A stretch of 40,561 nt of DNA, from positions 1-40,561 of the forward strand of contig JAHLWZ010000387.1 in NCBI GenBank assembly GCA_020536535.1, written 5' to 3'. A program made the position numbers and the translations under genes. The notes below the pieces were generated by a model that was not told the origin of the DNA, did no database searches, and worked only from the letters and a program-made list of their open reading frames with translations. This document shows positions 8,899-32,510 of this stretch, piece by piece (the stretch's first letter is position 1; each line of letters opens with the position of its first letter). Source of the DNA: Pelomyxa schiedti (taxonomy: Eukaryota > Protista > Evosea).

Positions 8899-10352
8899 AC
8901 ATTACCCTCTGCCCACTCAAACTTCGCGTTCCCTGTTGCTTCCCCACGCATGAGAAAAACGCCTTGGCTAGTTCACCAAAGCACTTGAATAGAATCAAAT
9001 CCGTAAAAGAATGAAAACCATGGCGGTGATGGTGCGGCTCTACGCCGCTGCTGAAAAAAGCCGAATTGCCAGTATCCATCCCACAATTTGTTTTTTTTTC
9101 CCCTTCGTGGTGTGTATCCTTCATGACGATGGTTCCCCAGCAATCGTGACTGCTTGTGTGGTGGGTTCATTGATACCGCACATCATTTATGGCCACTTGG
9201 TGTGGAAGTACGTTGCTTTACAGCAGAATGGTACAGGTAAATGAAAAAAGTGTGTTATAATATAAACAACCATTATTCCCTTAACCAACACTGTACACAC
9301 ACAAAGGCATTGAATTCAACCCCAGGGAACATGGCAATTAAATTCCGCCAGACTCATTTTCACTGGTTGGGCACTGTCCACCTTGCTGCGGGATGCTCTC
9401 ACAACTCATTTTTTACTCACTCAACTGTCCACCTTTCGGCAAAATGCTATAACAACTACATTCGCACTCCACATGCCAGGTATCCATTACATTGTATTTC
9501 ACATAACCACACTCGACTCACACAGAAAAAACACAATTCTGCTGAGATCGGATCCGCATCAGAATGGACTCCGCATGACATTCACTCTCCCCATCACCAA
9601 ACCACGCATTACAAGTGACTCTAGTCCAAGACCTCTGGCCTTTGTATCTCCACAAAAAAACCTTAAAATAAACAACAACCACACATTCTCTTCCTTCTCT
9701 GTCACTGCGGAAAAAAGAAACTTGGTTTTTGGCAAAAAAGTGCTATTTGTACAATTATTGCTGGCACTTGGCAAGGATTGGGCTGCTGGTGGTGGTATTT
9801 TGGGGGGCTTGTGTCTCCATGACCAACAGGCTGCTGGGGGATTTGCACGAGAGTCAAATTGGGGGGGTGGCTCGAATTGGGGATTGCACTTGATACTCCA
9901 TGAGAACCCACCCAACAACCCCCCATTGGCACCCAGTCCTCCGCGGGGGATTCCCAGCCCAGTTGGGTTTGGTCTGGGAATGTGTTCGGGGTTTCCAAAC
10001 ACCCACCGCGGTACTTTGGTGCCAAACTCGGGGGAAGGGTTCTCGTGGGGTGAGCCCAGCCCGGCCAATCTTCTTCTCTGTGGGTGTGCAACGCGCAGCC
10101 ACTTGAAATGGTCATCAGAGATCATACTGAACTTGAACCACCGGGGATGGGAGGGATTTGCCGGAACTCAGTGAAGATGAAGTACAAGTGGGCAAGAGGT
10201 TCCGGGAATCATCGTGGATCAGGTGAGCAGCTGTGAATTGGTGAGTTGGGAGAAAAAAAAAGCATGCAAGGTGTGCATTGCAATACCTTGCGTCCGGCTG
10301 CTGCTGACTCTGGCTGATTTTTTATTTTGGCTCTCAAATCAGATGGCTTGCT

Positions 10353-12867
10353 TTATTCATCGGTTATGTCAACAACAAGACTGTTGATTGGGATGTGAGT
10401 TGGGAGAAGACCCAAAACTGAAGAAGAGACCTGCTGACAACACAACTTGGTAATAATAATTTCGCGGATCGGGTAAAATAAACTGCCTGCCAATATATAT
10501 CATACAATCATCCACCACACTCGACGTGGTGTGAATCGCAGATGACCACATGATCACACATGGGAGTGTTACTATTATTTTCTCTGTGTGCGATATATTA
10601 GAACACACGGAATTCAACGGGAAAAGGGAGCCATACCCTCTCATGATAGCGGCGGCATTCCTCGATTCCAGCGAAACTATTTTGAATTGATGATCAAGCC
10701 ATATATGGTGAGTCAATACAGCAGCATATTCGGAGTTTCAGCACAGCAGAAATTACGGACTTTGAGCACGTGTGGGATGGTCGATGGTGTTACATGTTGG
10801 GGTGGTATTACAAATGCAAGTGCGGGTCTCTACAAGGTGGTCCCCACCAGCCTGGGGATCCACACTGCTGCTGGTGGCTGCTGCTGGTGGCTGCTGCTGT
10901 GGCTGCGGGGGAATGTTGGGCCACAAAGAGGACAAAGGCGAGGACGAGGGCCGCCACGTGGCCGGGGAGACTGGCGCAGCAGCTGCAGGATCAACGGCAT
11001 CAGCCATTTGGGCGTCGCGCTGTTGGGCAATCAGTCGCAGCAACCAGGCAGGCTGAACAGGCCCAGCAGGGCGTGGTGGCTGCGGGGGCGGCGTCGGGGG
11101 GTCTATGGCGGGCAACAAAGCTGCTGGTTGTGACGGTGGTACCCCAAACGGGAACCAACCAACGCCAGGTACACTAACACCAACAGCAGCAGCAGCAGCA
11201 GGCTGAACAGGCCGAGCAGGGCGTGGTGGCTGCGGGGGCGGCGGTACTCCAAACGGGAACCAGCCAACGCCAGGTACACTAACACCAACACCAACAGCAG
11301 CAGGCTGAACAGGCTGAGCAGGGCGTGGTGGCTGCGGGGGCGGTGGTACTCCAAACGGGAACCAGCCAACGCCAGGTACACTAACACCAACAGCATCACC
11401 AGCAGCAGCGGTACTAGTACTAGTGGTGCCAGTCCCCGGGGGCTGTTGCTGCTGCTGTGGGGTGCCACTACTGGTAATCCGTGGTTGTGAAGGCAGCGTA
11501 GGCATCATCATTATGGGAGCGGCGTCAGCAGAAGCAGAAGCAGAAGCAGCAGGAGATGATGTCACGTGGGTCTGCGGCTGTGACTGTGACTGTGACTGTG
11601 ACTGTGACTGTGACTGTGACGGGCCCTGCGCATCCCAGTCCCAGTCAAGCGACCCTGGTCTCACAGGGCGGGTCCACGACGTCGTCGTTGTCCCATCAGT
11701 ACTTGTAGTCACAGCCGCGGCGGCGGGGGTCGTTGTCGTACTTGGTGCCTGTGCCTGCGACGGCGGGTGCTGCACTCCCCAGTCCCAGTCGAGCGCCCCG
11801 GGCAGCGTGGGGCGGGTCCAAGTAGGGGTCGGGGTCGCGCTGCTGCTGTCGCTGAGGCCATCACCGCCGTCTGCTGGAGGGGCTGCACTGGGAGTGTGTC
11901 GTGGGGCGGGCGACGGCGAGGCGGAGGAGGACGAGGGCGAGGATGATGGGCGACGTAGCAGGGGGCTCGGCGGCGACGCGGCACGAGAATGATCGTCGGT
12001 AGCAGCAGCATCAGGGAGCAGGGCGGCACCTGTTGTGGCAGCGGCAGCCGCAGGAGCGAGGCGTGGGCGGGCCACGATGCGGGAGAAAAGCGTCCCGTCT
12101 CGTTGGAAATCAAATGCAAAGCAATTCTCGGGCAGAGGTTCACGTGTCGAGCCGGCTGGTCTGTTCAGCTTCGGAACGACGAATGCTACTCTTTGTCCAA
12201 AGACCTGTTGTGGGTATGGATCAGTGGGACTGCAACACGAAGATACAGAAACACCCAAACACAGTCAATTCCACTCACAGCAACACACAAAACACACCCC
12301 GTAAAGCACGTCAGCCACTGCGCCAGCAACCGACTGGGCTGCAACCAAGAACAGAGAGTCGGCCAGCCACGGCGGCACGTAGTCCACGTCGCGCCCCGGG
12401 GCGCAGAACGACTCGTCGTCGGCGGAGACCCAGTAGCAGTCGTCGGGGAGGGCTCGCCACCACCCCGTGCCTGTCCCGCTGCCAACAGCTCCAAACGGGT
12501 GCGACGAGGGGGATGATGGCGACGAGGGCGACGAGAGTGACGGCGAGGAGGATGACCACGAGGAGGAGGAGGAGGAGAAGCCAGCAGCGAGGGGGAGGCT
12601 CGTAGGCGTCGAGGAGCGGGGGCGGGGAGTGTCGAGCACGCGGAGGTGCTGGTCGTCGCCGTGGTCGTGCAAGTCCAGGAGGGGATGCGTGGGCCAGCCA
12701 CCGAGCGGATCACGACGAGGAGCACCGATGTACGAGGAGGGGACGCGTGGCTCGGCTGCGAAGCTGCGCGGGGGGGTGGTCGGCGCGGGAAAGGCGAAGG
12801 CGCGGGCAACTGGGAGGCTCGCGGGGGTGAAACCGCGTCTGGTCGTGGCACTAGTACTCGCGGGCAT
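10353..12867 (-). CDS. Hypothetical Pro/Ser/Ala/Gln-rich protein with internal peptide repeats and a small Cys/His-rich C-terminus (spliced)
   Basis: Exon 1 (MPASTS...DVLYG) splices into the 501-aa ORF (PTDPYPQQ...). Four further short GT-AG introns keep the frame through ISLESRNAAAIMRG, ENNSNTPMCDHVVICDSHH, AVYFTRSAKLLLPSCVVS and LVVDITDE*. The 3' exons are tentative. Confidence 0.55.
11044..11395. repeat. Coding tandem repeat, ~102-105 nt unit, 3 copies plus a partial
   Basis: Unit containing ccaaacgggaacca(a/g)ccaacgccaggtacactaacaccaac recurs at ~11135, 11240 and 11342; it encodes GVSVPGVGWFPFGVPPPPQPPRPAxPVQPA on the minus strand. Confidence 0.92.
11579..11620. repeat. (TGTGAC)7 microsatellite encoding (SQ)n on the minus strand
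   Basis: Seven perfect hexamer copies read directly. Confidence 0.95.
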
Positions 12868-13749
12868 GGCCCGGCTGCAAAAAAACGTTAGTCTCGAGAC
12901 GATGGAAACACGCAAAAATTGTGGGAGAGCTGCTCACCGTACGAGGACGGCAATACCCAAAACAGTGATCGTAACCAAAACGCTTCCTAACGCAAACATT
13001 GCGGTAATACGGTATGCAAGAAACTCAAACTCGAAAAAAAAGCAAAAGTGGTCGTCTCCTTCAAAATTTGACCTTTTAAATCAAAAAAACCAAAAACCAC
13101 AGTTGCACAACGTGAGAATTTACATCCTGATAGATCACTGGCACCACCCCCACCTCAGAACAACCTCCGCATCGTGGAAAGAATCATGCCTCTGCACGGA
13201 GCCCCCAATTGTTCCGGCAGGTAACTCTTCAATCACTGCGCTACTAGACTAAACTCTTACCAGAAATCATCATCAACCCGGCGAACTTAAAATTTAAGTT
13301 GAGCCAGTGCTGCGATACAACTGTAACTATGATGTGGATGCAGAGGCAATTGCATCGCCGGTGAATCACAACAGTTCCAAACGGCCTTTTCCACCCGGCC
13401 GCATTTTCGTTTTACTCTTCGAATCCCACAATCACCCACAAAACAACAACAGCCACCCTGTGGCGAGGTGACCTGTTTCCCCTGCACCACACCAAAGAGA
13501 CAGTAATACCAAAACTTATTGATTTCATTATACTGGGGACACACTCCCAAATTCAGACTTGAGGGCCGTGTGGACCACATCTTTCTACTCTTGCAGGTAT
13601 TAGGAGATTGTTGTTTGGGTGACCAGTACCCAATATCCAATCTGGAAACTATTTCTCTTTTTCGCTTGTGTCATGTCGGCTTTTCGTTTTCGCTATGTGT
13701 GAGTGCAGTGCTTGTTGGTGGCGGATCTACGACAGGGACAGCAACGCAA

Positions 13750-15230
13750 ATGGGCGACACAACTGGCTGCAGTAACTGCGAAGGCGAGGGCGTCCCTCGC
13801 TATGCGGAGATCTCTGTCGCGGTTCAGCCGGATCTCGAGATCCAAGGCTCAAGCGCAAGTGCGGCAGCGATATTGGTGACCAACACAAACACCAGCGGCG
13901 ATGACGCCGTTGACGACCCTGTACATCGCGATGACGGCGACGGCGGCGTTGGCAAACCAACTACAACTACTTCGTCGTTGTGCGGGATGTTGGACAAGGC
14001 ATGCGTTGCTGTGTTCCGGTGCCGATTCGCAGGTGGCGTGAAGGAGGAGTTGTTGGCAGTGTGGAAGATGGCTTGGCCTATCTGCCTCGGCTACGCTCTG
14101 TGGATGCAAATCGGCGTGGTGAACTTGATATTCATGGGTCACGTTGGCCCTAATGAGATGGCTATGCACGGAGCTCTGCTTTGTCCTCTCTGCCTATAGT
14201 GAACGTTAGAACGAGAATGACGAGAAACTATTGGTGTTTGGTTCTGTTCGGAATACATTCTGGTGTTTCTGAGACAGGTCACTTCTCTTTCTTGCTTTAA
14301 GATGCCAAAATTCTCTTAGGATCCAGAGATCTCTGCTGCAGCTGCAAGATTCATGAAGATAATCAGTCCGTCATTGTTTCCCTTTTTCTTGTACGAATCC
14401 ACCGAGAGAACTCTTCAGTGCCAAGGGATAGTTTTCCCAGCCATGGTACCATCTCTTTCTTGGTCGCTCTTCTCCAACACACCTTGCAGATCATTTGTGC
14501 GGCCTCTGTTGTACTTCTGGTGATTCTGCTCTGTTTTTTTGTTTTATATCTTGGGCTTGGCCTCACAGGTAAAGAGGCATACCAATTTTGCATTTAATGG
14601 TTTTCAGGATCCGCCATGTCAATGACAATTGTTTATTTCTTCATGCCTTCCGTTCTCATACCCTACATTCTCATCAGAAAATTGCATCGCCAGTTAAGAT
14701 CCAAATTCCATAGAAACATATAACACCGTACTAGAATGTGGGGAGGATTTTCTCGCGAATGTTTCAAAAATTGGAAGGAATTTTTGTTTTTGGGCCTGCC
14801 TGGCGCCTTCATGACCTGTGCTGAGTGGTGGGCTTTTGAAATCATGACGATTCTTTCCGGTAGGCCTAATTAATTTTTGGACTCTGTTCTAAGATAAAAA
14901 GGTCTTCTTGGCACTGTCTCTCTGGCATCAAACGTTGTAATCATGAACACCTACGGCATCTTTTTCATGGTGTGTCCTTCTTTTCTCCGGTGCAATTTCA
15001 TTAACTGCCGGTTGTCAGATTCCACTTGGAGCCAACTTTCCTACCCGAGCAAGGTGCATAGCACTATCCAGTGGTCTCCTAAACTCAGAATAATGATGAA
15101 GTAGCACTGGTATGACATTCTCCAATACCTATTTCTTTGCCCAACAAATTTGAATGCAGGTTGCCAAGCTGTTGCCCATGTGCGCCCTGTTTCTCACCTC
15201 TGATGGACTCATGAAGCATTCAACATATTT
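13750..15230 (+). pseudogene. MATE-family efflux transporter, internally deleted and probably non-functional
   Basis: MATE motifs EELLAVWKMAWPI...FMGHVG, DPEISAAAARF, WGGFSRECFKNWKEFLFLGLPGAFMTCAEWWAFE, FMIPLG and VAKLLP...DGL are present. The LDTLCxQAYGA segment and the segment between IPLG and ANxPxRAR (normally carrying RVGNxLG) are absent, and similarity stops after DGL. Confidence 0.7.
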
Positions 15231-15740: not shown

Positions 15741-17011
15741 ATGCTGTTGTGCACGTGCCCAGGGGATGGATTCGTGGCGTGGATGACGACGCTCCACACG
15801 TGCGCGTATACGGCGGCCGAGCAGGCCTCGCTGTACCTCGGTTTGATTAACATTGCCATTTGGATCATCGCACAGGTTCGTCCCGTGTTTTTTTGGAAAT
15901 TTCTGTCGGTGTTTTTAGTTTGTGTTAGGACTTTTAAGTTTTTCTTTTTGAATCGCTCTATTCTAACTTGCATCCTGTGGTTCTTTTTGGCAGATGCCTC
16001 AAATTATCACAACGTTCCAGACAGGTGAGTTTCTGTGGGTTTTGTTTCATAAATTAATTTTCGTAAGGTAATGCTGGCGCTCTCTCTTTCACATTTATAT
16101 TCACGTGGCTCGCTGGCGACACTTGCAACTTGTTGGGGTGCTTTTTTACTAAACAGACCGCTGTGCAAACTCTCACAGCTGTCTACTTCTGCTCAATTGA
16201 TGTTGTTATGATCTCACAGTGGTCCTTTTTCACCATCCGCAAGCGGAAACGGGATAAACTTGCAATGTTGAACCCATACTCACGTGGTGACCCCGAATCA
16301 GTACCACAGGAGGAGAGTACCACCATTAACCCCACTGGCGATTCCTACAACTCCACTTCAAACAAACTCCTTGCCAGTGCCACACTTTTATTTATCTTTG
16401 TCACACTGTGCCGGTTCTATACAAGCGAACACACCCAACCAGGGCAACTTTCAACCCCACACACGGGCAGAACCCTGCTGGAGTTTCAGGACACACCACA
16501 GTCACCACTCACCAACCCACTGCCACATCACGAGGAGGGCACAATGTATTCGGCAGCTGAATTCACAACTACTTCTACCACTGCAGTTACCACCACCTTA
16601 TTTAATGGCAGCTCATACTCACTCTCGTCATCCTCATCACCAGACTACTGTAATACTCCTTATGACCTCTCCACAGTAATGAGAGTGCTTGGTGACATTT
16701 GCGCTTGGAGCTCAGGGCTTCTGTACTTCTTTGGCAGGGTTCCTCAGGTGTACCACAATTGGAAGCGGAAGTCAGTGGAGGGTCTATCGCCCATCATGTT
16801 TGCGTGTGCTGTTCTGGCCAACATATGTTACAGCGTGTCAATTCTTCTTCTGCAGCCGGACTGGTCAAGCCCAGAGTTTTGGGAGAGCAAGTTTCCTTAC
16901 CTGTTGGGAAGCTTGTTCACACTTGTGTGGCCTGCCTTCATTCTATGCCAGTTTGCTTACTATGGTTGGTGGCGCAAGAGGAAGTTCGACTACCGGCCTG
17001 TCAATGAATAA
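15741..17011 (+). CDS. PQ-loop repeat lysosomal/vacuolar amino-acid transporter (PQLC2/YPQ-like), 3 exons
   Basis: Two PQ motifs, IWIIAQ|MPQIITTF...ALSFTFIFTWLAGDTCNLLG and LYFFGRVPQVYHNWKRKSVEGLSPIMF, plus multiple TM segments. Confidence 0.9.
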
Positions 17012-18557: not shown

Positions 18558-20229
18558 TCATGATAAGGTTGAAGCTAGTTTGTATTTTGCCCATGTGGGT
18601 GGTGATGCGTGCACCCAAGGAAAGTCATGCCTTGATTGAAGCCACTCCACAACACACTCGGAACCCCAGAAGGGATCCTCATAACCTGGAACACTCATCC
18701 CGAGTGTGCAGCACACAATCCCGCCAACAACAACTGTTGTCCTCCTTCCTCCCACCTCATCAGTGTTGGATTGCACCACGATGTTGTACACACAGTCAAT
18801 GTTTGGATCCATGTGGTACGGCTCGCCAAGAACCGTTGGGAGGCACCACTTGTTGTTGTGCAGTATTGGGTGGTCGGGTGTGATCTCAAGAAGAGAACAA
18901 TTTCTGTCACTCGGTGATGCCACTACACTGATAATGAGTGTTGGCTTCACAACTGGGCACCTGCGGCGATGTGAGGAAGAATTAGAATTATTACTATTGC
19001 GTACTTCCAAATGCAACACACAGTGGCAGTGGAGGTGATTTGGGTTTCATTGCATTTTAGTTTGACAACAGAAGAAGCAACGGAATCACCCACTTCGAGG
19101 TCTTTCATGCAACATTCCTTGTTGTTTGCCAGTAAAATGGTGGAGTGTGCCCCAAAACATACAATCTCGGTCTAAATATTGTAAGAACTCCAAAAGGATA
19201 CATAGGGGCGACACTCTTGAAGGCAGGAGCATCCCAAATTGGAAAACATCTCGTTGGATCCCACAGGAAAGAGGACTTCTGCCATCCAATTCCTCGGGAA
19301 AAGCCAGGGTAAGTCCAAGAGCCGTTTTGTGCATTCGTCCACAATGGTTCGGTCTTGGCCAAGTTATACAATGGCTTGCATGTGCGTGAAATTCTTATCA
19401 AGGAAACAAAGTCGAGGTATTCCAGAGTGAGCTTCAAAGCTTGGATATCCAGTGTTCGCAATGTACTGAATAAGAAATAAGCGAAACATCGGTAATATAA
19501 CCTGTACCTAATTACTGGCTGTGAGTCGAGTCCCTTGTGACTGCTTTTAGAAAAAAAACTAAAATTGAAACTGAAGAATCGGGGCGGTTTCGGCTTTGTA
19601 CCAATCGGGTCTACAAATAAACCAGCTCTTCCGACACTCTCAAAGAGGAACTCAAGTCCAATTTGTAACTTGGAGCTTGTTAGTAGTTTCAGTGAATTGT
19701 ATACGGGAAAAAGAAGCAACCTGCACTGGAAGTAACCATATGACTCTGTTTTTATTGCTGCAGCAACTCCGCTATGAAATGCAACCTAACGGAGATTTTT
19801 TACTTGTAGCATTTCTTTCAAGTGCATTCACCTCTCGATGTATCTCAGAAAGAAGATCCATTTGCAGTCCCACAAGAAGAACAATGACCTTTATGAATAA
19901 AACAAGGGAAACAGAAGGAGAGATACATGAGGTGATGCTTCTCTCAAAGCAGGGAAGAAGTCGTCGAACACCGAATCAAAAGACTGTGCATCAGCAAGTG
20001 AGAAGCAAAGAAGAACAATGTTGATGTAATCAAAGCTGAATGGTGTTCAAAACGAGATTTCTTGTACTGGAATGTTACTAAATGTCTTTCATTGCTGTGA
20101 ACATTTCTAATCCTCCACTACCAATAATAGAGTGTTATCTTATCCTGAATGGTAACTTTGGACTAAGATTCACCTTTCATGCAACTCCAACTGCACAATG
20201 GTACCATAGACAGTTACCTGCTTGCTCAT

Positions 20230-27509: not shown

Positions 27510-30500
27510 ATGAGCCAAGGTGCTGCGCCCTCACTATCGATCAAAGTTAGATCTTCCGTTTCTTTGCCTCATTCTTACCTTACTTTTCTCCCTGCCATTC
27601 AGAGTTCATTGGAGCATTCGATCGAAGCGGAGCAGCGCGCGGCCGTGGCCAGATCTCGAATCACCGAAGCCGCGATAATCAACTTGCTTCGGCGCCACGA
27701 TGCCGATTCTCTTAAACGCCGTTTCAAACCGCCAACAGTGCCCCCTCAAACGACGCCTGCAGTTGCTGTTAATTGTGGTGCCGCTTGCGAGACCAGGGAT
27801 TCTGCAGCGCCGGCGAGCGCATTGACGAATACAGCAGCGACGAATGGTCATTCAGCGGCCTCTGATTCTGTGGGAACCACGACCACTCTGACTAGGGAGC
27901 ATGAGGAACACGACGCGTTGATGGATTCCTCAGGGATTGTCTTTTCTAGTGGTGACAACGATTGTGGTGGAGCCCCGCCTAATGACCCTCTGGAAGATGA
28001 AAAAGATGCTATTAGTTCAGAGGGACCCCGGTGTGTTACTGGCCATGTAGCTATATGCTCTTCTGGGGGTGGCGTTCGTTCTCTCACCGCTACGGTTGGA
28101 TTTATGGACGGACTGTGCGAAACCGGGATCCTGGATTGTGTTGAGTATTGTGCTGGGCTGTCTGGTAGTACTTGGTGTTTCTCTCAGTGGCTTACTGACC
28201 CACTTTGTGGAAACCCGTTCCATGGGGATACTGACCCTTGGGCTTGTACTACAGAACCTCTTTCTGGTGCTTCCCCACTTTCTTTACCAGAACCACCAAT
28301 GGATGCAACAAATCCCACCAATTTACCAGCAGTACCATATGTTTCTCCACCCAGTCAACATCGAATCAATGACAAAGGAACCATCCCTCATGCCCTAACT
28401 CTCTCCACGCATTTGGGACTTAAGCAACAGCTGGAACAAACCTCTCCGGAGCGTCCCTTTTCTCTCTTCTTGGTTGGGCTGGGACTTGACTGGAAACAGG
28501 TTACACAAGCTCTATGGCAAGGTTTAAAGTCGCGTGACTCGGCAGCAGTAAATGCCTGGGCGTCAATTCTAGCCTCTCAGCTAATGCAAAAGAGATGCGA
28601 AATCGCTGGCATTCCCAGCCCTCGGGATATACTTTTTAGTAGCTGTGCAGAGAAATGCAACACAGGAAAGTTTCCTATTCCCATTTGCACTACGATATGC
28701 AGCCGGAACGGCGACGGAAATCGAGAATGGGTTGATATCTCTCCTTTCATTGTGCGCAAGTCACGTGTACCCGTGTGCTCCACCAAGAACCTTGCTCTCG
28801 ATCCAATACCAATACTTATGGCTGTCTGTGGCTCAGCGTTTGCAATAGATCTTAAGACAAAGATACCCCCATTAGGGTACGCTACCCTGGAAAGCATGGA
28901 AGAGCGGCTTCCGTATTGCATTCAGAAGTACGTTCACCCACTCTTGCAACAGCATTTTCCTGCACATGGAGTGTGGCATGAGTCACTAGTAGGAGATTTG
29001 CGTGATGCTGGCTTGGATTGCAATATACCACTTCCAGCACTACAACAGCGCACCAGTGCTGATGGAAGAGGCGTTTCACTCATTCTCGTCCTTGATTCAT
29101 CAAGAAAGACACTTGGATGTGAACAACTAGCAAAAGCAGTCGATAAGGGGTATTTCAGGATTTCTGAAGCTGATAGAGACAAATTGAGAGCTCCTTTTGG
29201 CCCAACAGAGGGGGTCAGATTCTTTCGCCCTGCAAGAATGGGAGATCCTGCAGTTTTGTATTTTCGTGGTTACACTCTACTGCGTACCATAACACTGGCT
29301 TTCACCAGTGAGCAAGTAGATGCCATGACCTCACACGTGAGACAACTTGTGGTAAACAATGCTCAAACCATAGCCTGGGCAATCAAAAAGTACTGTACCA
29401 CTCCCTGCTCAAAAGTGTTACCACTCCTTAAGAATGTTGTGGAATGCACAAATATGCGTGAAATTGTGCGTAGAAAGCTCAGCCTTTTTTACAAAGAAAA
29501 ATTTACCACTATGTCCTTCTTTGACAACAATATTGATCCCAGAAACTTTGCATCAGTTTTTTGCAAAATGCTGCTCACTCCTGAAAGCAAAAATGATACT
29601 GGAATGCCGGAAAAGGAAACTAGTCACAAAGTAGATATCGAACAGCTACCAGCACTACTGCTGGCTTCTAGGAAAAAGCGCTGCATACTTGAGGCTGCAG
29701 TTGGATCAGGAAAATCCACAATATGTAAGTTCCTTTGCAGGGAACAGGGGAATGATACAAGCAGTTTTGCTGCAATAGTGCTGATAGAATTACAATCAGT
29801 GGAACCTGAAGCACTGTCGGCTGACAACTTTGATGTATTTAAATTTATCACCGAAAAGCTGGGAATCAGAGATGAGCAAGTTACTACGTTTATCCAGAAC
29901 TATTGCTCGGAAGTGTTGTGGGTTTTTGATAGTTTTGATGAAGTTGATTCCAATCCACATTTCTCCAAATTCCTCCAGCATCTTCGAGATGGAAACGTGA
30001 GGTGGGCACAATGGGCAATTATTGCGTCCAGAATGGAGCGGAGACACTCACACTTTGTTAATGCAATGTGCATCAAAGTGCAACCCTGGTCAGAGGACAA
30101 TGCTGTAGAATATATCGAGAAGTTCTTCGGAAACATGGAGAGTTCCGGGGAAGGTCCCCCAGAGCTAGGAAAGCAGAAGGCCAAGAAAATTCTGCGTAAT
30201 ATTCCTATTGGAGATAAGACACCACTCATTTGCGAACTCGTGTGCACTATAGCACACAAATTGCCAGCTGATAGTACCTCAAAACTGTCTTTATTATCTA
30301 ATATCACGGACTACCTTTGGGAACGCGCAATGATTAAGTTTGGCAATGAGTTCTCACTTGAGGCAGTGCACCAAGCCCAAGAACGTCTACTGGATTTGTC
30401 CAGTGAAGCTTACTGTGCAAGTGATGGAAGAATAGCTCTTGACGTTTCTCAATCCATTGATGGCCTGGTATTCAGGAGTGGGTTGTTGTGTCAATTCGGC

Positions 30501-32510
30501 TCATCAGACAACAACCCATCAAACAATAAAAAATGGTGTAGATTTGTGCATAGAATGCTACTGGAATACCATACGGCTAAGGCAGTTGAGAGAGACTTCC
30601 AGGAACTAGAAAAAACACTACCGCAGCAGGTTGTGCCTGGGCAACAATCTCTCCGCAAATCCGCTCCTGGTATACCACTCAAAGCAAGTAGACCCACCTT
30701 GTTTGAAAAGTGCATCAAAAGGCTTTCCCCTGATAACTACGAACTTCTTAGACTCATCTCAGAGTTTGTTCAAAATACCAACCACTGGGAAGTAGTCTTT
30801 TCCTTTGCAGTGAACAAGTTTTTAGGGAAACTTCAAAGGAAAAAAGCGCAATTTGAGTTGGATATGAGCATGTGTGGGGACAACTTGCTGACAAGAGAGT
30901 ACTGGTGTTCAAAGCTTCGCTTGGATATTTGTGTATTAATGGCAACAATTATTGGGGGGAAAGCAGGCACGTACTTTGTAAACGCAGTAACAGTACCTGA
31001 AAGTACTATTGGTTCAATCGGAAAGCTTTTTTCTGCAAAGAAATCCCCTGTTTTTTACCAATTAATGGTGGAACCTTCTGCCAGGTATGGTAACATATTC
31101 CTACTGAGACATTTCATAGAATGTGGCGGGAAGAACCAAATCAAGGACGCTTTATTCATCGCCTTTGTAGCCAACCAAGGCCATGTTGTTGAGTGGTTGC
31201 ACTCAACCTACAGTGGTCTTCATACAGTTTCAGTAGCTGACGCCGCTCATATTGGTAACACGGAGGCCGTCATATCCCTCATAAAAGCTCAACCACCTGG
31301 GGTCTCGGTCACTAATGCAGTGATTCAAGCGACTAATGCTGCAGTGGAGAGTGACCGTCAGCTTGTCTTGAAACGGCTCCATGAATGTAACTTGATTACA
31401 CCCAAAGATCTGGCTCCTTTCATTTGCAAGTCCTGGAAATTGCATAAGATGTGCAAGTGTTTCCACTTCCTGAGTCGCTTAGTCTGCACTGACTTGCTGC
31501 AGCTTGATTGGACTACATTTGGAGTTGTGTCTTGGCTTGGGGTAGAAACAGAAATGCTTCGGGCATTTTCTGAATTTATTGATGGGAAATTACTCACCAA
31601 GATTGACCTTGGGTGTCTGAAGGTTGAAGACATTACATTGACATCTCTTATTCAGAAATGCAGTAGCCTTCTGACACTGGAAGTTCACTCTCCTAAGGTA
31701 ACAGACAAAAGTCTTTATGTACTTGCGAAGTCGTGTTGCAATCTTTCTTGCCTCAACCTTGCGTACTGTAATGTTTCCGACTCGGGTGTCATCTCCGTGT
31801 TAAAGTCGTGTATATTTCTCACGTCACTCAATCTGAACATGACCCAAACAAGTGCCAAAGCCGTTCTTGCTATTGCTCAATCTGACACTAAATTCACAAC
31901 CCTTTCCCTGAACAACGGTGCTTCCGCCCAGCATGTCCTACAATTCGTGGAAAAGCACCCTGACCTTACCTCCTTGGAGATATCTGGTCCAAGCATTTCC
32001 GACGCTGAAACTCTAACCTCGCTTCAATGCTTCCCGGCACTTGCGACTTTGGGCTTGTACCAGGTTGAAGGTGTCGGGCAGGAATGGATGCTCCAGCTCA
32101 CACAGTTATGCTACCTTCAATCCCTGTCTGTTTGGGGTGCAGTGCTTACAGATAGCGTTTTCTCGGTTCTCCTGAGAATGCCGGCACTCAAATCCCTCAA
32201 ATTGCACAAAGTAGAGCTCCTAGGGACCGGCACCCGTGACTTCTTGAAACCACCTTTTTGCTCTCTCCACAGCTTGGAACTGTGGTGTTCCAACATTTCA
32301 TCCACCGGCATTTCTGGCATTCTACAATTGATACAGACCAGAGCAAACCAAAGCCCCACAACCAACACCGAGACTGTCACTTTTGAAGGAGTACCTTACC
32401 CCATACAAACACCATGTTCTGATGTACTTATCTTTGTGACCACACCATGTCCACCCAAATGGAGGGACCTGCACAGACGAAACATCATCAGATTTTGTGG
32501 TAAATCGTAG
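27510..32510 (+). CDS. NLR-like STAND protein: cPLA2/lysophospholipase domain + NACHT + ankyrin-like repeats + LRRs (intronless, 1666 aa)
   Basis: SSGGGVRS (G186-188), GLSGSTW (S218) and DAG (D499); Walker A AAVGSGKST (K735); Walker B LWVFDSFDE (807-811); sensor IIASR; TPL; winged-helix FVHRMLLEYHTA (~1012); ankyrin-like helices aa ~1190-1295; LRRs aa ~1360-1610. Confidence 0.88.
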   Translation: MSQGAAPSLSIKVRSSVSLPHSYLTFLPAIQSSLEHSIEAEQRAAVARSRITEAAIINLLRRHDADSLKRRFKPPTVPPQTTPAVAVNCGAACETRDSAAPASALTNTAATNGHSAASDSVGTTTTLTREHEEHDALMDSSGIVFSSGDNDCGGAPPNDPLEDEKDAISSEGPRCVTGHVAICSSGGGVRSLTATVGFMDGLCETGILDCVEYCAGLSGSTWCFSQWLTDPLCGNPFHGDTDPWACTTEPLSGASPLSLPEPPMDATNPTNLPAVPYVSPPSQHRINDKGTIPHALTLSTHLGLKQQLEQTSPERPFSLFLVGLGLDWKQVTQALWQGLKSRDSAAVNAWASILASQLMQKRCEIAGIPSPRDILFSSCAEKCNTGKFPIPICTTICSRNGDGNREWVDISPFIVRKSRVPVCSTKNLALDPIPILMAVCGSAFAIDLKTKIPPLGYATLESMEERLPYCIQKYVHPLLQQHFPAHGVWHESLVGDLRDAGLDCNIPLPALQQRTSADGRGVSLILVLDSSRKTLGCEQLAKAVDKGYFRISEADRDKLRAPFGPTEGVRFFRPARMGDPAVLYFRGYTLLRTITLAFTSEQVDAMTSHVRQLVVNNAQTIAWAIKKYCTTPCSKVLPLLKNVVECTNMREIVRRKLSLFYKEKFTTMSFFDNNIDPRNFASVFCKMLLTPESKNDTGMPEKETSHKVDIEQLPALLLASRKKRCILEAAVGSGKSTICKFLCREQGNDTSSFAAIVLIELQSVEPEALSADNFDVFKFITEKLGIRDEQVTTFIQNYCSEVLWVFDSFDEVDSNPHFSKFLQHLRDGNVRWAQWAIIASRMERRHSHFVNAMCIKVQPWSEDNAVEYIEKFFGNMESSGEGPPELGKQKAKKILRNIPIGDKTPLICELVCTIAHKLPADSTSKLSLLSNITDYLWERAMIKFGNEFSLEAVHQAQERLLDLSSEAYCASDGRIALDVSQSIDGLVFRSGLLCQFGSSDNNPSNNKKWCRFVHRMLLEYHTAKAVERDFQELEKTLPQQVVPGQQSLRKSAPGIPLKASRPTLFEKCIKRLSPDNYELLRLISEFVQNTNHWEVVFSFAVNKFLGKLQRKKAQFELDMSMCGDNLLTREYWCSKLRLDICVLMATIIGGKAGTYFVNAVTVPESTIGSIGKLFSAKKSPVFYQLMVEPSARYGNIFLLRHFIECGGKNQIKDALFIAFVANQGHVVEWLHSTYSGLHTVSVADAAHIGNTEAVISLIKAQPPGVSVTNAVIQATNAAVESDRQLVLKRLHECNLITPKDLAPFICKSWKLHKMCKCFHFLSRLVCTDLLQLDWTTFGVVSWLGVETEMLRAFSEFIDGKLLTKIDLGCLKVEDITLTSLIQKCSSLLTLEVHSPKVTDKSLYVLAKSCCNLSCLNLAYCNVSDSGVISVLKSCIFLTSLNLNMTQTSAKAVLAIAQSDTKFTTLSLNNGASAQHVLQFVEKHPDLTSLEISGPSISDAETLTSLQCFPALATLGLYQVEGVGQEWMLQLTQLCYLQSLSVWGAVLTDSVFSVLLRMPALKSLKLHKVELLGTGTRDFLKPPFCSLHSLELWCSNISSTGISGILQLIQTRANQSPTTNTETVTFEGVPYPIQTPCSDVLIFVTTPCPPKWRDLHRRNIIRFCGKS

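Follow-up and report, generated by a model that had tools for sequence, protein, structure and literature searches.

Examination of a 40.5-kb stretch of genomic DNA from the amoeba Pelomyxa schiedti (hereafter the window, by which we mean the whole stretch analysed) revealed one unbroken reading frame of 1666 codons, stop included, at positions 27510–32510 of the + strand. The encoded protein combines a lipase of the cPLA2 type with a NACHT module, an ankyrin-like stretch and LRRs, and so has the effector–NTPase–sensor layout that a preceding sequence-only reading had proposed for a single ORF of a protist; P. schiedti is indeed such a host. Judging by analogy with characterised receptors, we consider it on balance probable that the protein is an intact STAND/NLR-type switch with a group-IV phospholipase as its output, which would be gated by a ligand, activated by oligomerisation and employed in cell-autonomous defence.

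Gene model and transcript evidence

In GenBank, the gene is represented by KAH3763376.1, an entry automatically named 'cytosolic phospholipase A2' and 1647 aa in length after removal of a 57-nt intron. This in-frame, pyrimidine-rich GT..AG intron (27546–27602; + strand, as are all features below unless stated otherwise) derives from the GenBank annotation and is located outside the RNA contigs. Residue numbers in the spliced GenBank model are 19 lower than in the unspliced frame, whose numbering is used here; searches were run with either the unspliced window frame or database proteins. The second-longest ORF in the window measures 501 aa, and simple arithmetic puts the chance of encountering 1666 stop-free codons at ~e^-80.

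At the N-terminus, residues 1–174 (27510–28031) form a low-complexity region rich in Ser, Thr and Ala, which up to residue ~174 yielded no family match and showed no conservation among paralogs. The C-terminal tail (residues ~1596–1666; 32295–32507) was modelled with low confidence and had no family match in Pfam. A SKICH-like domain follows the LRRs in one of the paralogs (C820); for the window copy, this domain was ruled out, with neither a Pfam match in the tail nor a tblastn match downstream.

A single-cell RNA-seq run belonging to the study that produced the genome supplied the transcript evidence for the window copy, namely two cDNA contigs (strand not given) at positions 28301–28640, one end of which carries part of the SMART oligo, and 31967–32369, with a full SMART oligo tail. 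The thinness of this RNA evidence, two short contigs obtained with the same single-cell library, was counted against a role in defence. At the DNA level, two runs yielded contigs that contain the genomic stretch in full, and a third run contigs that cover nearly all of it (0.97 of the words sampled), with one sample underlying all three.

Paralogs and relatives

The P. schiedti genome contains six intact paralogs, including the window copy, the other five being located on different contigs and sharing the same layout. All six PLA2_B (cPLA2-type) domains detected in the genome sit in these fusion genes, none of them in a free-standing cPLA2, and patatin-type genes number at least seven. Outside Pelomyxa, transcripts of Mastigella, the cercozoan Papus and ~8 metagenomic eukaryote-like sequences show the same layout (8 matches in the metagenome scan, most of them partial). 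Complete fusion transcripts were found in Mastigella eilhardi, implying that, in this relative, a single mRNA encodes both the lipase and the NACHT half. One ortholog pair (C951 in Pelomyxa, P0006 in Mastigella) shares 50.6% identity, and the Archamoebae copies fall into one clade in a quick tree. A pattern scan of limited sensitivity returned no fusion relatives from 185,579 prokaryotic species genomes (GTDB) or from IMG/VR viral contigs, a negative result that makes a viral or bacterial origin less likely; PLA2_B matched none of 14 prokaryotic control genomes.

Paralog C951 carries an in-frame TAA and was considered as a pseudogene. This was ruled out, as the TAA falls inside a ~33-nt GT..AG intron that is spliced out in the GenBank model. 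As a separate observation, the P0026 contig (L015) is ORFan-rich, harbors SET and DUF5710 genes and has a GC content of 52%; for this contig, a giant-virus origin was considered.

These data also bear on whether the ORF might be an artefact, i.e. two adjacent genes joined in error, a contig from a contaminant, or a pseudogene in decay. The assembled DNA came from single cells out of a polyxenic culture and had undergone whole-genome amplification (PMC8887013), and RNA coverage of the window copy is sparse, both of which would be in line with such an origin. Conversely, the 5 kb are free of stops, the stretch recurs in contigs of three runs from the one sample, five paralogs of the same layout reside on other contigs, the Mastigella fusion transcripts are complete and the Archamoebae copies group in a single clade. 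An artefact is, in our judgement, extremely unlikely.

A cPLA2-type lipase domain

The lipase domain, of the cPLA2 type (PLA2_B, group IV), spans residues ~175–640 (28032–29429) and emerged from Pfam, profile and AF2/Foldseek searches alike. As a single sequence, it scored 33 bits against the PLA2_B family of Pfam, passing the cut-off of 23, and the lipase profile A3 aligned with human cPLA2-alpha (1cjy) at an E value of 4e-51, covering chain residues 187–435 and 540–718. The AF2 model of the domain (pLDDT 77.7, pTM 0.81) had cPLA2-alpha (1cjy; 3e-16) and cPLA2-delta (5iz5; 4e-15) as best Foldseek matches, both at a probability of 1.0, and Atlas cPLA2 clusters matched the model with a TM of up to 0.68 over 385 residues. 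The earlier assignment of the domain to the cPLA2/PLB type was thereby borne out.

Alignment with cPLA2-alpha further located the catalytic elements. The oxyanion/phosphate-binding loop S-G-G-G-V-R (residues 185–190; 28062–28079) aligned with S-G-G-G-F-R200, placing it at G197/G198/R200 of the human enzyme, with R190 opposite R200. The nucleophile elbow G-L-S-G-S (residues 216–220; 28155–28169) corresponds to G-L-S228-G-S of 1cjy, S218 being equivalent to S228, and in the profile alignment R-D-A-G (residues 498–501; 29001–29012) lies opposite V-D549-S-G, such that D499 coincides with the catalytic Asp549. Both the Ser and the Asp are invariant across the family. With its catalytic residues intact, the output domain is predicted to be a catalytically competent group-IV (cPLA2-type) phospholipase. 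A Pro-rich insertion at residues ~250–295 (28257–28394), for which AF2 confidence is low, occurs in this copy only.

The domain shares the patatin superfamily, and within it belongs to the cPLA2 branch, not to the patatins. A patatin (PNPLA) identity was rejected, as there was no Pfam Patatin match and the motif reads G-x-S-G-S instead of G-x-S-x-G; patatin-type structures, including patatin, VipD and CapE, reached Foldseek E values of 1e-3 to 1e-1 only, vs. ~1e-16 for cPLA2. Pfam detected no C2 domain in the window protein, whose N-terminal ~170 aa match no family. C2 is an accessory that does not define the cPLA2 catalytic family, most mammalian members having one and cPLA2-gamma lacking it. 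Given the missing C2 domain, calcium cannot be what recruits the protein to membranes; oligomerisation or some other part of the protein must do so.

The NACHT module

Downstream of the lipase, Pfam, profile and fold comparisons delineated a NACHT NOD module at residues ~651–1180 (29460–31049), in which a leading helix is followed by NBD, HD1, WHD and HD2. The single-sequence NACHT score of 27.1 bits passes the Pfam cut-off of 26.7. An AF2 model reaching from the NACHT module to the end of the protein (pLDDT 75.7) retrieved NLRC4 (8.6e-16) and NOD2 (1e-15) in Foldseek, and the NLRP3 NACHT crystal domain (134–676) superimposed onto residues 651–1205 with a Z score of 21 and an rmsd of 3.6 Å over 408 residues. 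Profile A4 matched NOD2 (4e-35) and NLRC4 (2e-28). A feature search of the ESM Atlas returned generic NACHT clusters only, with every score <0.9. These Pfam and NLRP3 matches agree with the earlier placement of a NACHT domain at residues ~720–1030.

The module contains a Walker A motif, G-S-G-K-S-T (residues 732–737, with K735; 29703–29720), and a Walker B motif with acidic extension, hhhhDSFDE (residues 802–811, with D807, D810 and E811; 29913–29942), as well as S-R841, harboring the sensor Arg, and T-P905-L. His1014 (30549–30551), part of an F-x-H motif in the winged-helix region and invariant in the family, is a candidate counterpart of the ADP-contacting His in animal NLRs. Every motif named by the sequence-only reading, namely S185-G-G-G-x-R190, S218 and R498-D499 in the lipase and G732-x-G-K735-S-T, D807/E811, R841, P905 and H1014 in the NACHT module, was recovered, with S218, D499 and K735 at the residue numbers it had given.

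The ankyrin-like and LRR region

Of the double ANK+LRR sensor proposed earlier, the LRR part was clearly recovered and the ankyrin part proved degenerate. The LRRs, ~10 repeats of ~25 residues each and of the Cys-containing FBXL/SKP2 type, occupy residues ~1364–1595 (31599–32294), as deduced from model and profile. LRR families remained below the Pfam cut-off with the single sequence, from which SKP2 was matched at an E value of 4e-7, and profile A4 matched FBXL2 at 6e-59; the model comprises ~10 strands with a period of ~25 residues, and the fold matched FBXL17, FBXL2 and ribonuclease inhibitor at Z scores of 22–26.

The ankyrin-like stretch consists of degenerate helical repeats at residues ~1185–1340 (31062–31529), with helix pairs every ~33 residues in the model. 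Pfam found no Ank match in the window copy as a single sequence; among family members, Ank_2 was matched in 7 of 17, with a best E value of 3.7e-4. When the family profile of the stretch was used, the best PDB matches were nearly all ankyrin-repeat proteins or designed ankyrins (E values of 3.8e-5 to 1e-3). Visible with the family profile only, this stretch is the weakest part of the architecture.

Conservation and rates of evolution

The GGGxR, GxSGS, RDAG and P-loop motifs are invariant in ~19 aligned members wherever the respective region is present, at identities of only 17–35%. Likewise, the six paralogs, and also their relatives in other protists, retain Walker A and B, the sensor Arg and the His of the WHD region. 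Among three close paralogs (a set that leaves out the window copy), dN/dS increased from 0.20–0.26 for the lipase, the lowest of all domains, to 0.60–0.71 for the LRRs, with all values <1; the LRR end thus changes at a higher rate than either the lipase or the NACHT domain. This gradient toward the LRRs resembles immune receptors. Together with the invariance of the lipase and P-loop motifs, we count it as indirectly supporting a role akin to that of a receptor.

The lipase domain might alternatively be a pseudo-enzyme or adaptor, kept as a surface for oligomerisation or recruitment and leaving the output to other proteins. Its cap/lid region is poorly modelled and contains the copy-specific disordered insertion, as could be expected of such a domain. 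This explanation is nonetheless quite improbable: dN/dS is lower in the lipase than in any other domain, and no member that has the region has lost GGGxR, GxSGS or RDAG, at identities down to 17–25%, a retention hard to explain without catalysis.

Proposed function

Extrapolating from NLRC4, NLRP3, NOD2 and fungal PLP-1, the resting protein would be a closed, ADP-bound monomer. Binding of a ligand to the LRR and ankyrin region would free the NACHT module, which could then exchange its nucleotide and oligomerise. The N-terminal lipase domains, clustered in this way, would be switched on at the membrane, and the ensuing phospholipid hydrolysis might either kill the cell or rupture a membrane compartment holding a microbe. 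In favor of such a defensive role, we count the at least seven patatin-type genes in the genome, as these could handle housekeeping lipolysis. Counted against it, in addition to the RNA evidence given above and to dN/dS values that all lie below 1 and stem from three other paralogs, are the FBXL-type LRRs, since repeats of this type mostly bind endogenous proteins, and the combination of six genes with stable Mastigella orthologs, which implies less turnover than in typical expanded immune NLR repertoires.

Part of this evidence also suits a regulated housekeeping or signalling lipase that is no pathogen sensor, where NACHT, ANK and LRR would form a nucleotide-gated scaffold that brings the only enzymes of the cPLA2 type in the cell to endogenous partners. 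Such a lipase could operate in phagosome or vacuole remodelling, in control of obligate endosymbionts, or in the release of fatty-acid or lysolipid messengers. As the genome's only detected cPLA2-type domains (six of six PLA2_B matches), with no free-standing cPLA2 beside them, the six fusion genes could encode the cell's ordinary cPLA2s, and mammalian cPLA2 is a signalling enzyme. The stability of Pelomyxa–Mastigella orthologs, the FBXL/SKP2-like LRRs and dN/dS <1 throughout point the same way, as do the bacterial and archaeal endosymbionts of P. schiedti described in PMC10579272. We still regard a housekeeping or signalling lipase as rather unlikely, given that the protein shares its layout and fold with STAND proteins of the death and immunity type, that the sensor end is the quickest to evolve, that patatin-type lipases are available for housekeeping, and that the nearest NACHT relatives bear CARD, DED, TRADD-N, HEPN or kinase domains.

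Returning to the preferred reading, a defensive switch, one may extend it from the single protein to the family. In free-living protists (Archamoebae, Cercozoa and others), cPLA2-NACHT-ANK-LRR proteins would then serve as genuine immune receptors that act cell-autonomously, sensing microbes, viruses or misbehaving endosymbionts and unleashing a phospholipase in response. We put this generalisation forward as a tentative possibility. If true, the NACHT-LRR plan, equipped with a killing enzyme of its own, is found far beyond animals, and amoebae possess a lipase-executed pathway of death or compartment rupture.

NLR-type receptors are central in animal, plant and fungal immunity; in the literature searched, almost nothing was found on such receptors in amoebae and most other protists. 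Here, a NACHT-LRR switch structurally near NLRC4, NOD2 and NLRP3 occurs in anaerobic amoebae and a cercozoan, wired to a cPLA2-type lipase instead of a death-fold adaptor, adding data on whether the NACHT-LRR arrangement predates or extends beyond Metazoa. As Pelomyxa hosts obligate prokaryotic endosymbionts, the family offers an entry to protist immunity or symbiont control, and it provides a simple, self-contained system for asking how oligomerisation switches on a phospholipase.

Comparison with known systems

With animal NLRs (NLRC4, NOD2, NLRP3, NAIP), the Pelomyxa protein has in common a NACHT module (NBD-HD1-WHD-HD2) followed by C-terminal LRRs. Where animal NLRs carry an N-terminal CARD, PYD or BIR adaptor, however, it has a cPLA2-type enzyme; it also differs in the ankyrin-like stretch between HD2 and the LRRs, and in LRRs that are FBXL/SKP2-like and not purely ribonuclease-inhibitor-like. 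We know of no caspase-1 or ASC pathway in this unicellular amoeba host.

The closest characterised analogue, and the best functional precedent, is PLP-1 of Neurospora crassa (patatin-NB-ARC-TPR), a self-associating protein whose induction of cell death requires both the lipase active site and the NB-ARC P-loop (PMC12881547). As in the Pelomyxa protein, a phospholipase effector at the N-terminus is joined to a STAND NTPase with a sensor made of repeats. Patatin NLRs of fungi are nearly all of the NB-ARC type (PMC12258605), whereas the Pelomyxa protein pairs a cPLA2/PLA2_B lipase with a NACHT NTPase and an ANK-like plus LRR sensor. The novelty asserted by the earlier reading stands in part: no description of a cPLA2-NACHT fusion was found in the literature searched, but the protein is already in GenBank as one of six paralogs and has relatives elsewhere, and the general principle of a lipase-bearing NLR is already established by PLP-1 (PMC12881547).

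Mammalian cPLA2 enzymes (group IVA alpha and IVD delta) share the catalytic fold, the Ser-Asp dyad and the GGGxR loop, at an identity of ~17% over the structural alignment. In contrast to them, the Pelomyxa protein lacks a C2 domain and a visible MAPK-site region, and ~1000 residues of NACHT, ANK and LRR sequence follow its lipase.

Bacterial anti-phage systems (CBASS CapV/CapE; bNACHT and Avs) display a shared logic, being built either on a sensor-switched membrane phospholipase or on a STAND NTPase whose N-terminal effector is an enzyme. To the Pelomyxa lipase, CapE and CapV are only weak fold matches, and these patatin-type CBASS lipases are switched on in trans by cyclic nucleotides, whereas the Pelomyxa lipase is of the cPLA2 type.

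An uninterrupted reading frame and its genomic setting

The longest ORF of the 40.5-kb window by far runs over 1666 codons without a stop (27510–32510, plus strand; the runner-up encodes 501 aa), bearing out the single ORF proposed in the sequence-only reading. A database search retrieved the same protein from GenBank, where it is already deposited under an automatic name (KAH3763376.1, 'cytosolic phospholipase A2 [Pelomyxa schiedti]', 1647 aa). The two versions differ solely by a 57-nt GT..AG intron in frame (27546–27602, plus strand), which the GenBank model annotates and removes; none of the RNA contigs matching the gene covers this intron. Residue numbers used here refer to the unspliced ORF, as they do in the sequence-only reading. 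With one tiny intron at most, the 5-kb gene compares with a genome average of 7.43 introns per gene in P. schiedti (PMC8887013); the gene may have been retroposed or transferred, or introns may have been selected against. Relatives from metagenomes are also single ORFs, a biased observation as prokaryote-style gene calling recovers only such copies. That the ORF is an artefact is unlikely. Each of its P. schiedti paralogs likewise contains an uninterrupted open frame of ~1000–1430 codons.

Transcription of the gene is hinted at by two contigs (28301–28640 and 31967–32369) from one single-cell RNA-seq run of the same study, whose ends carry the SMART template-switch oligo, in full on one and in part on the other. 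The stretch is also present in three runs of unrecorded type from one sample (whole in two of the three), which may be the source DNA and so lend no independent support. The Mastigella transcriptome contains complete fusion ORFs, so the relatives in that organism are made as single mRNAs.

Elsewhere in the window, an F-box ORF (19108–19719, minus strand) and a PQ-loop repeat ORF (16130–17008, plus strand) have no obvious link to the NLR-like gene. Positions 10001–14000 stand out by a GC content of 0.56–0.58 (vs. ~0.45 elsewhere) and hold several overlapping ORFs of 175–501 aa on both strands, two of which (501 and 226 aa) had no match in Pfam.

The effector is a cPLA2-type lipase

Searched alone, the window copy exceeded the cut-off of Pfam PLA2_B only at aa 180–226, the stretch that phmmer also matched to human cPLA2-alpha (E 1.3e-9). 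A family profile built from 34 related lipase domains matched cPLA2-alpha (1cjy; chain residues 187–435 and 540–718) with an E-value of 4e-51 and cPLA2-delta with 3e-31. This alignment pairs S-G-G-G-x-R190 with the R200 loop of human cPLA2-alpha, G-L-S218-G-S with its S228 and R-D499-A-G with its D549. An AlphaFold2 (AF2) model computed from the same alignment (pLDDT 77.7, pTM 0.81) had only cPLA2-alpha or cPLA2-delta among its ten best PDB matches (3e-16 to 3e-11), with patatin, VipD, PlpD, ExoU and CapE/CapV reaching only E > 1e-3, and an ESM Atlas shape search returned cPLA2 clusters (TM 0.68). Within the patatin/cPLA2 superfamily, the effector therefore belongs to the cPLA2 branch, and the earlier assignment of aa ~180–630 holds by both profile and fold. 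The window copy lacks a C2 domain, its aa 1–169 match no family, and a Pro-rich insertion at aa ~250–295, modelled with low confidence, is peculiar to it. Loss of activity, i.e. a pseudo-enzyme, is unlikely: the lipase triad motifs, like the P-loop, are kept by every family member in which the respective region is present.

NACHT module and proposed composite sensor

Pfam NACHT scored barely above its cut-off in the window copy (27.1 vs. 26.7 bits). The AF2 model of aa 640–1666 (pLDDT 75.7) matched NLRC4 (8.6e-16) and NOD2 (1e-15), then NAIP and NLRPs, and the crystallized NACHT domain of NLRP3 (residues 134–676) could be superimposed on aa 651–1205 (Z 21, rmsd 3.6 Å, 408 residues). These model matches settle the NACHT identity that the sequence-only reading gave to aa ~720–1030. 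A family profile of the NACHT-LRR part likewise found NOD2 (4e-35), NLRC4 (2e-28) and NLRP3 (5e-24). G-S-G-K735-S-T, a Walker B motif with D-E extension (D807, E811), S-R841, T-P905-L and H1014 show little or no variation across the family.

The C-terminal LRRs read from the sequence were recovered by fold, with matches to FBXL17, FBXL2, SKP2 and ribonuclease inhibitor (Z 22–26), and by the NACHT-LRR profile (FBXL2, 6e-59); in the AF2 model, aa ~1364–1595 form ~10 strands at ~25-residue spacing. The ankyrin claim is the least secure. Pfam Ank did not match the window copy, but seven of 17 relatives matched Ank_2, the top PDB matches of the family profile for this region were nearly all ankyrin-repeat proteins or designed ankyrins (Kidins220 3.8e-5, ankyrin-1/2 2.4e-4, FEM1C 5.5e-4), and the AF2 model places helix pairs every ~33 residues between HD2 and the LRRs. 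This real, if weak, evidence points to an ankyrin-like stretch.

Paralogs and rival readings in P. schiedti

Five further copies share the layout and all motifs: a tandem pair on contig C682 (C682a, C682b) and single genes on C231, C820 and C951. The C951 copy was considered as a broken gene, but is intact because its in-frame TAA lies inside a ~33-nt GT..AG intron (L011:5904–5938). The GenBank model of the C820 paralog (P0002) ends in a SKICH-like domain (aa 1612–1692; 26.1 bits in the whole protein against a cut-off of 23.4, 20.3 bits alone), a fold known from autophagy receptors such as NDP52; a search of the window copy's tail and downstream DNA found no such domain.

In C682a, C682b and C231, three paralogs that are closely related and do not include the window copy, dN/dS was 0.20–0.26 in the lipase, 0.22–0.37 in NACHT, 0.31–0.63 in HD2/ANK-like and 0.60–0.71 in the LRR and tail. 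A receptor would be expected to combine a slow effector and switch with a fast sensor, as is seen here in three genes, with dN/dS above 1 in no domain. These genes (L002, L013, L014) resemble one another in a mosaic fashion: C682a and C231 share 84% N-terminal identity, C682a and C682b 46%, whereas HD2/ANK dS is 0.24 for C682a–C682b vs. 0.65–0.69 for the other pairs, suggesting gene conversion between paralogs.

The 52-Mb assembly contains six PLA2_B matches, all of them within the six family genes, which also account for six of the 11 NACHT matches reaching Pfam's cut-off. Other NACHT genes examined, namely one NACHT-WD40 gene (L023:1128–5915, minus strand; 1603 codons) and two ARM-NACHT-pentapeptide genes (L025:1860–9680, minus strand, and L024:4582–9999, plus strand; open frames of 2672 and 2906 codons), are giant uninterrupted ORFs too, despite the intron-rich genome.

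The main rival reading, a regulated lipase without an immune role, draws on these six genes holding the genome's only cPLA2-type domains, on the stability of orthologs and on the FBXL-like character of the LRRs; it is weakened, though not removed, by the at least seven patatin-type genes that exist for housekeeping lipolysis. A patatin-like phospholipase is joined to a dynamin-family GTPase and a protein kinase in a single 1407-aa ORF (L027:1691–5911 = G000:C927:29690–33910, plus strand), a second NTPase-plus-lipase fusion of this genome and different in kind from cPLA2-NACHT. Some 7 kb from the tandem cPLA2-NACHT pair lies a 1040-aa ORF (L026:3369–6488 = G000:C682:18368–21487, minus strand) whose patatin domain is C-terminal and whose ~640 N-terminal residues are unassigned.

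Relatives outside P. schiedti

The domain-architecture search called for by the sequence-only reading placed the cPLA2-NACHT protein in a family rather than as a one-off. When 1.84 billion representative proteins were searched exhaustively with a profile, ~15 clusters showed both domains in one stretch. Members include three genes of the Mastigella eilhardi transcriptome (P0003, P0006, P0018), one of the cercozoan Papus ankaliazontas (P0009), and metagenome, Logan or unnamed-assembly sequences (P0008, P0019, P0020, P0022, P0023, P0024, P0165, P0026). Scanning IMG/VR and prokaryotic species genomes by sequence pattern turned up no relative, and PLA2_B matched none of 14 prokaryotic control genomes.

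P0165 lies on a compact eukaryotic contig (L018, JGI 3300062241, 49 kb) among intron-free neighbours on one strand (myosin, BEACH, ZPR1, Nop, endonuclease, carbonic anhydrase), a gene run that recalls polycistronic euglenozoan genomes. P0026, with BspA-type LRRs, occurs on 17 contigs; its 90-kb contig (L015, JGI 3300062177; 52% GC) is dense in ORFs with almost no Pfam matches except SET and DUF5710, and may stem from a virus or a eukaryote.

In a quick ML tree, Pelomyxa and Mastigella copies group together (SH-aLRT 94), the window copy forming a long branch beside a group of C951, C820 and Mastigella sequences. Several lineages are therefore older than the Pelomyxa/Mastigella split, and the window copy is without a close ortholog in the data. 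Among lipase-only relatives with a name, a protein of Bodo saltans is nearest; the closest NACHT-only ones are a NACHT-kinase, whose cluster includes a Dracoamoeba member, and NLRs of the echinoderm type that carry CARD, DED, TRADD-N or HEPN.

Proposed mechanism and comparison with known receptors

The best-supported reading is that the gene encodes a putative nucleotide-gated, sensor-controlled phospholipase. The parts list and its conservation are the sole observed portion of this mechanism, the steps being modelled on NLRC4, NLRP3, NOD2 and Neurospora crassa PLP-1, a patatin-NB-ARC-TPR protein whose induction of death depends on the patatin site as well as on the P-loop (PMC12881547). At rest, the protein would adopt a closed, ADP-bound form; binding of a ligand to the ankyrin-LRR end would open it, and NACHT oligomerisation would cluster the lipase domains, which might then become active on a membrane.

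Literature searches turned up neither a cPLA2-NACHT fusion nor NLR-like lipases of amoebae. The lipases listed in surveys of fungal NLRs include patatin and SesB but not PLA2_B, and choanoflagellates are on record as having proteins that combine NACHT with LRRs and lack death-fold domains (PMC6040629). As a kind, the lipase-armed STAND receptor is already known; the window protein differs from known examples in its lipase family, its NTPase clade, its composite ANK-like plus LRR sensor and its protist host.
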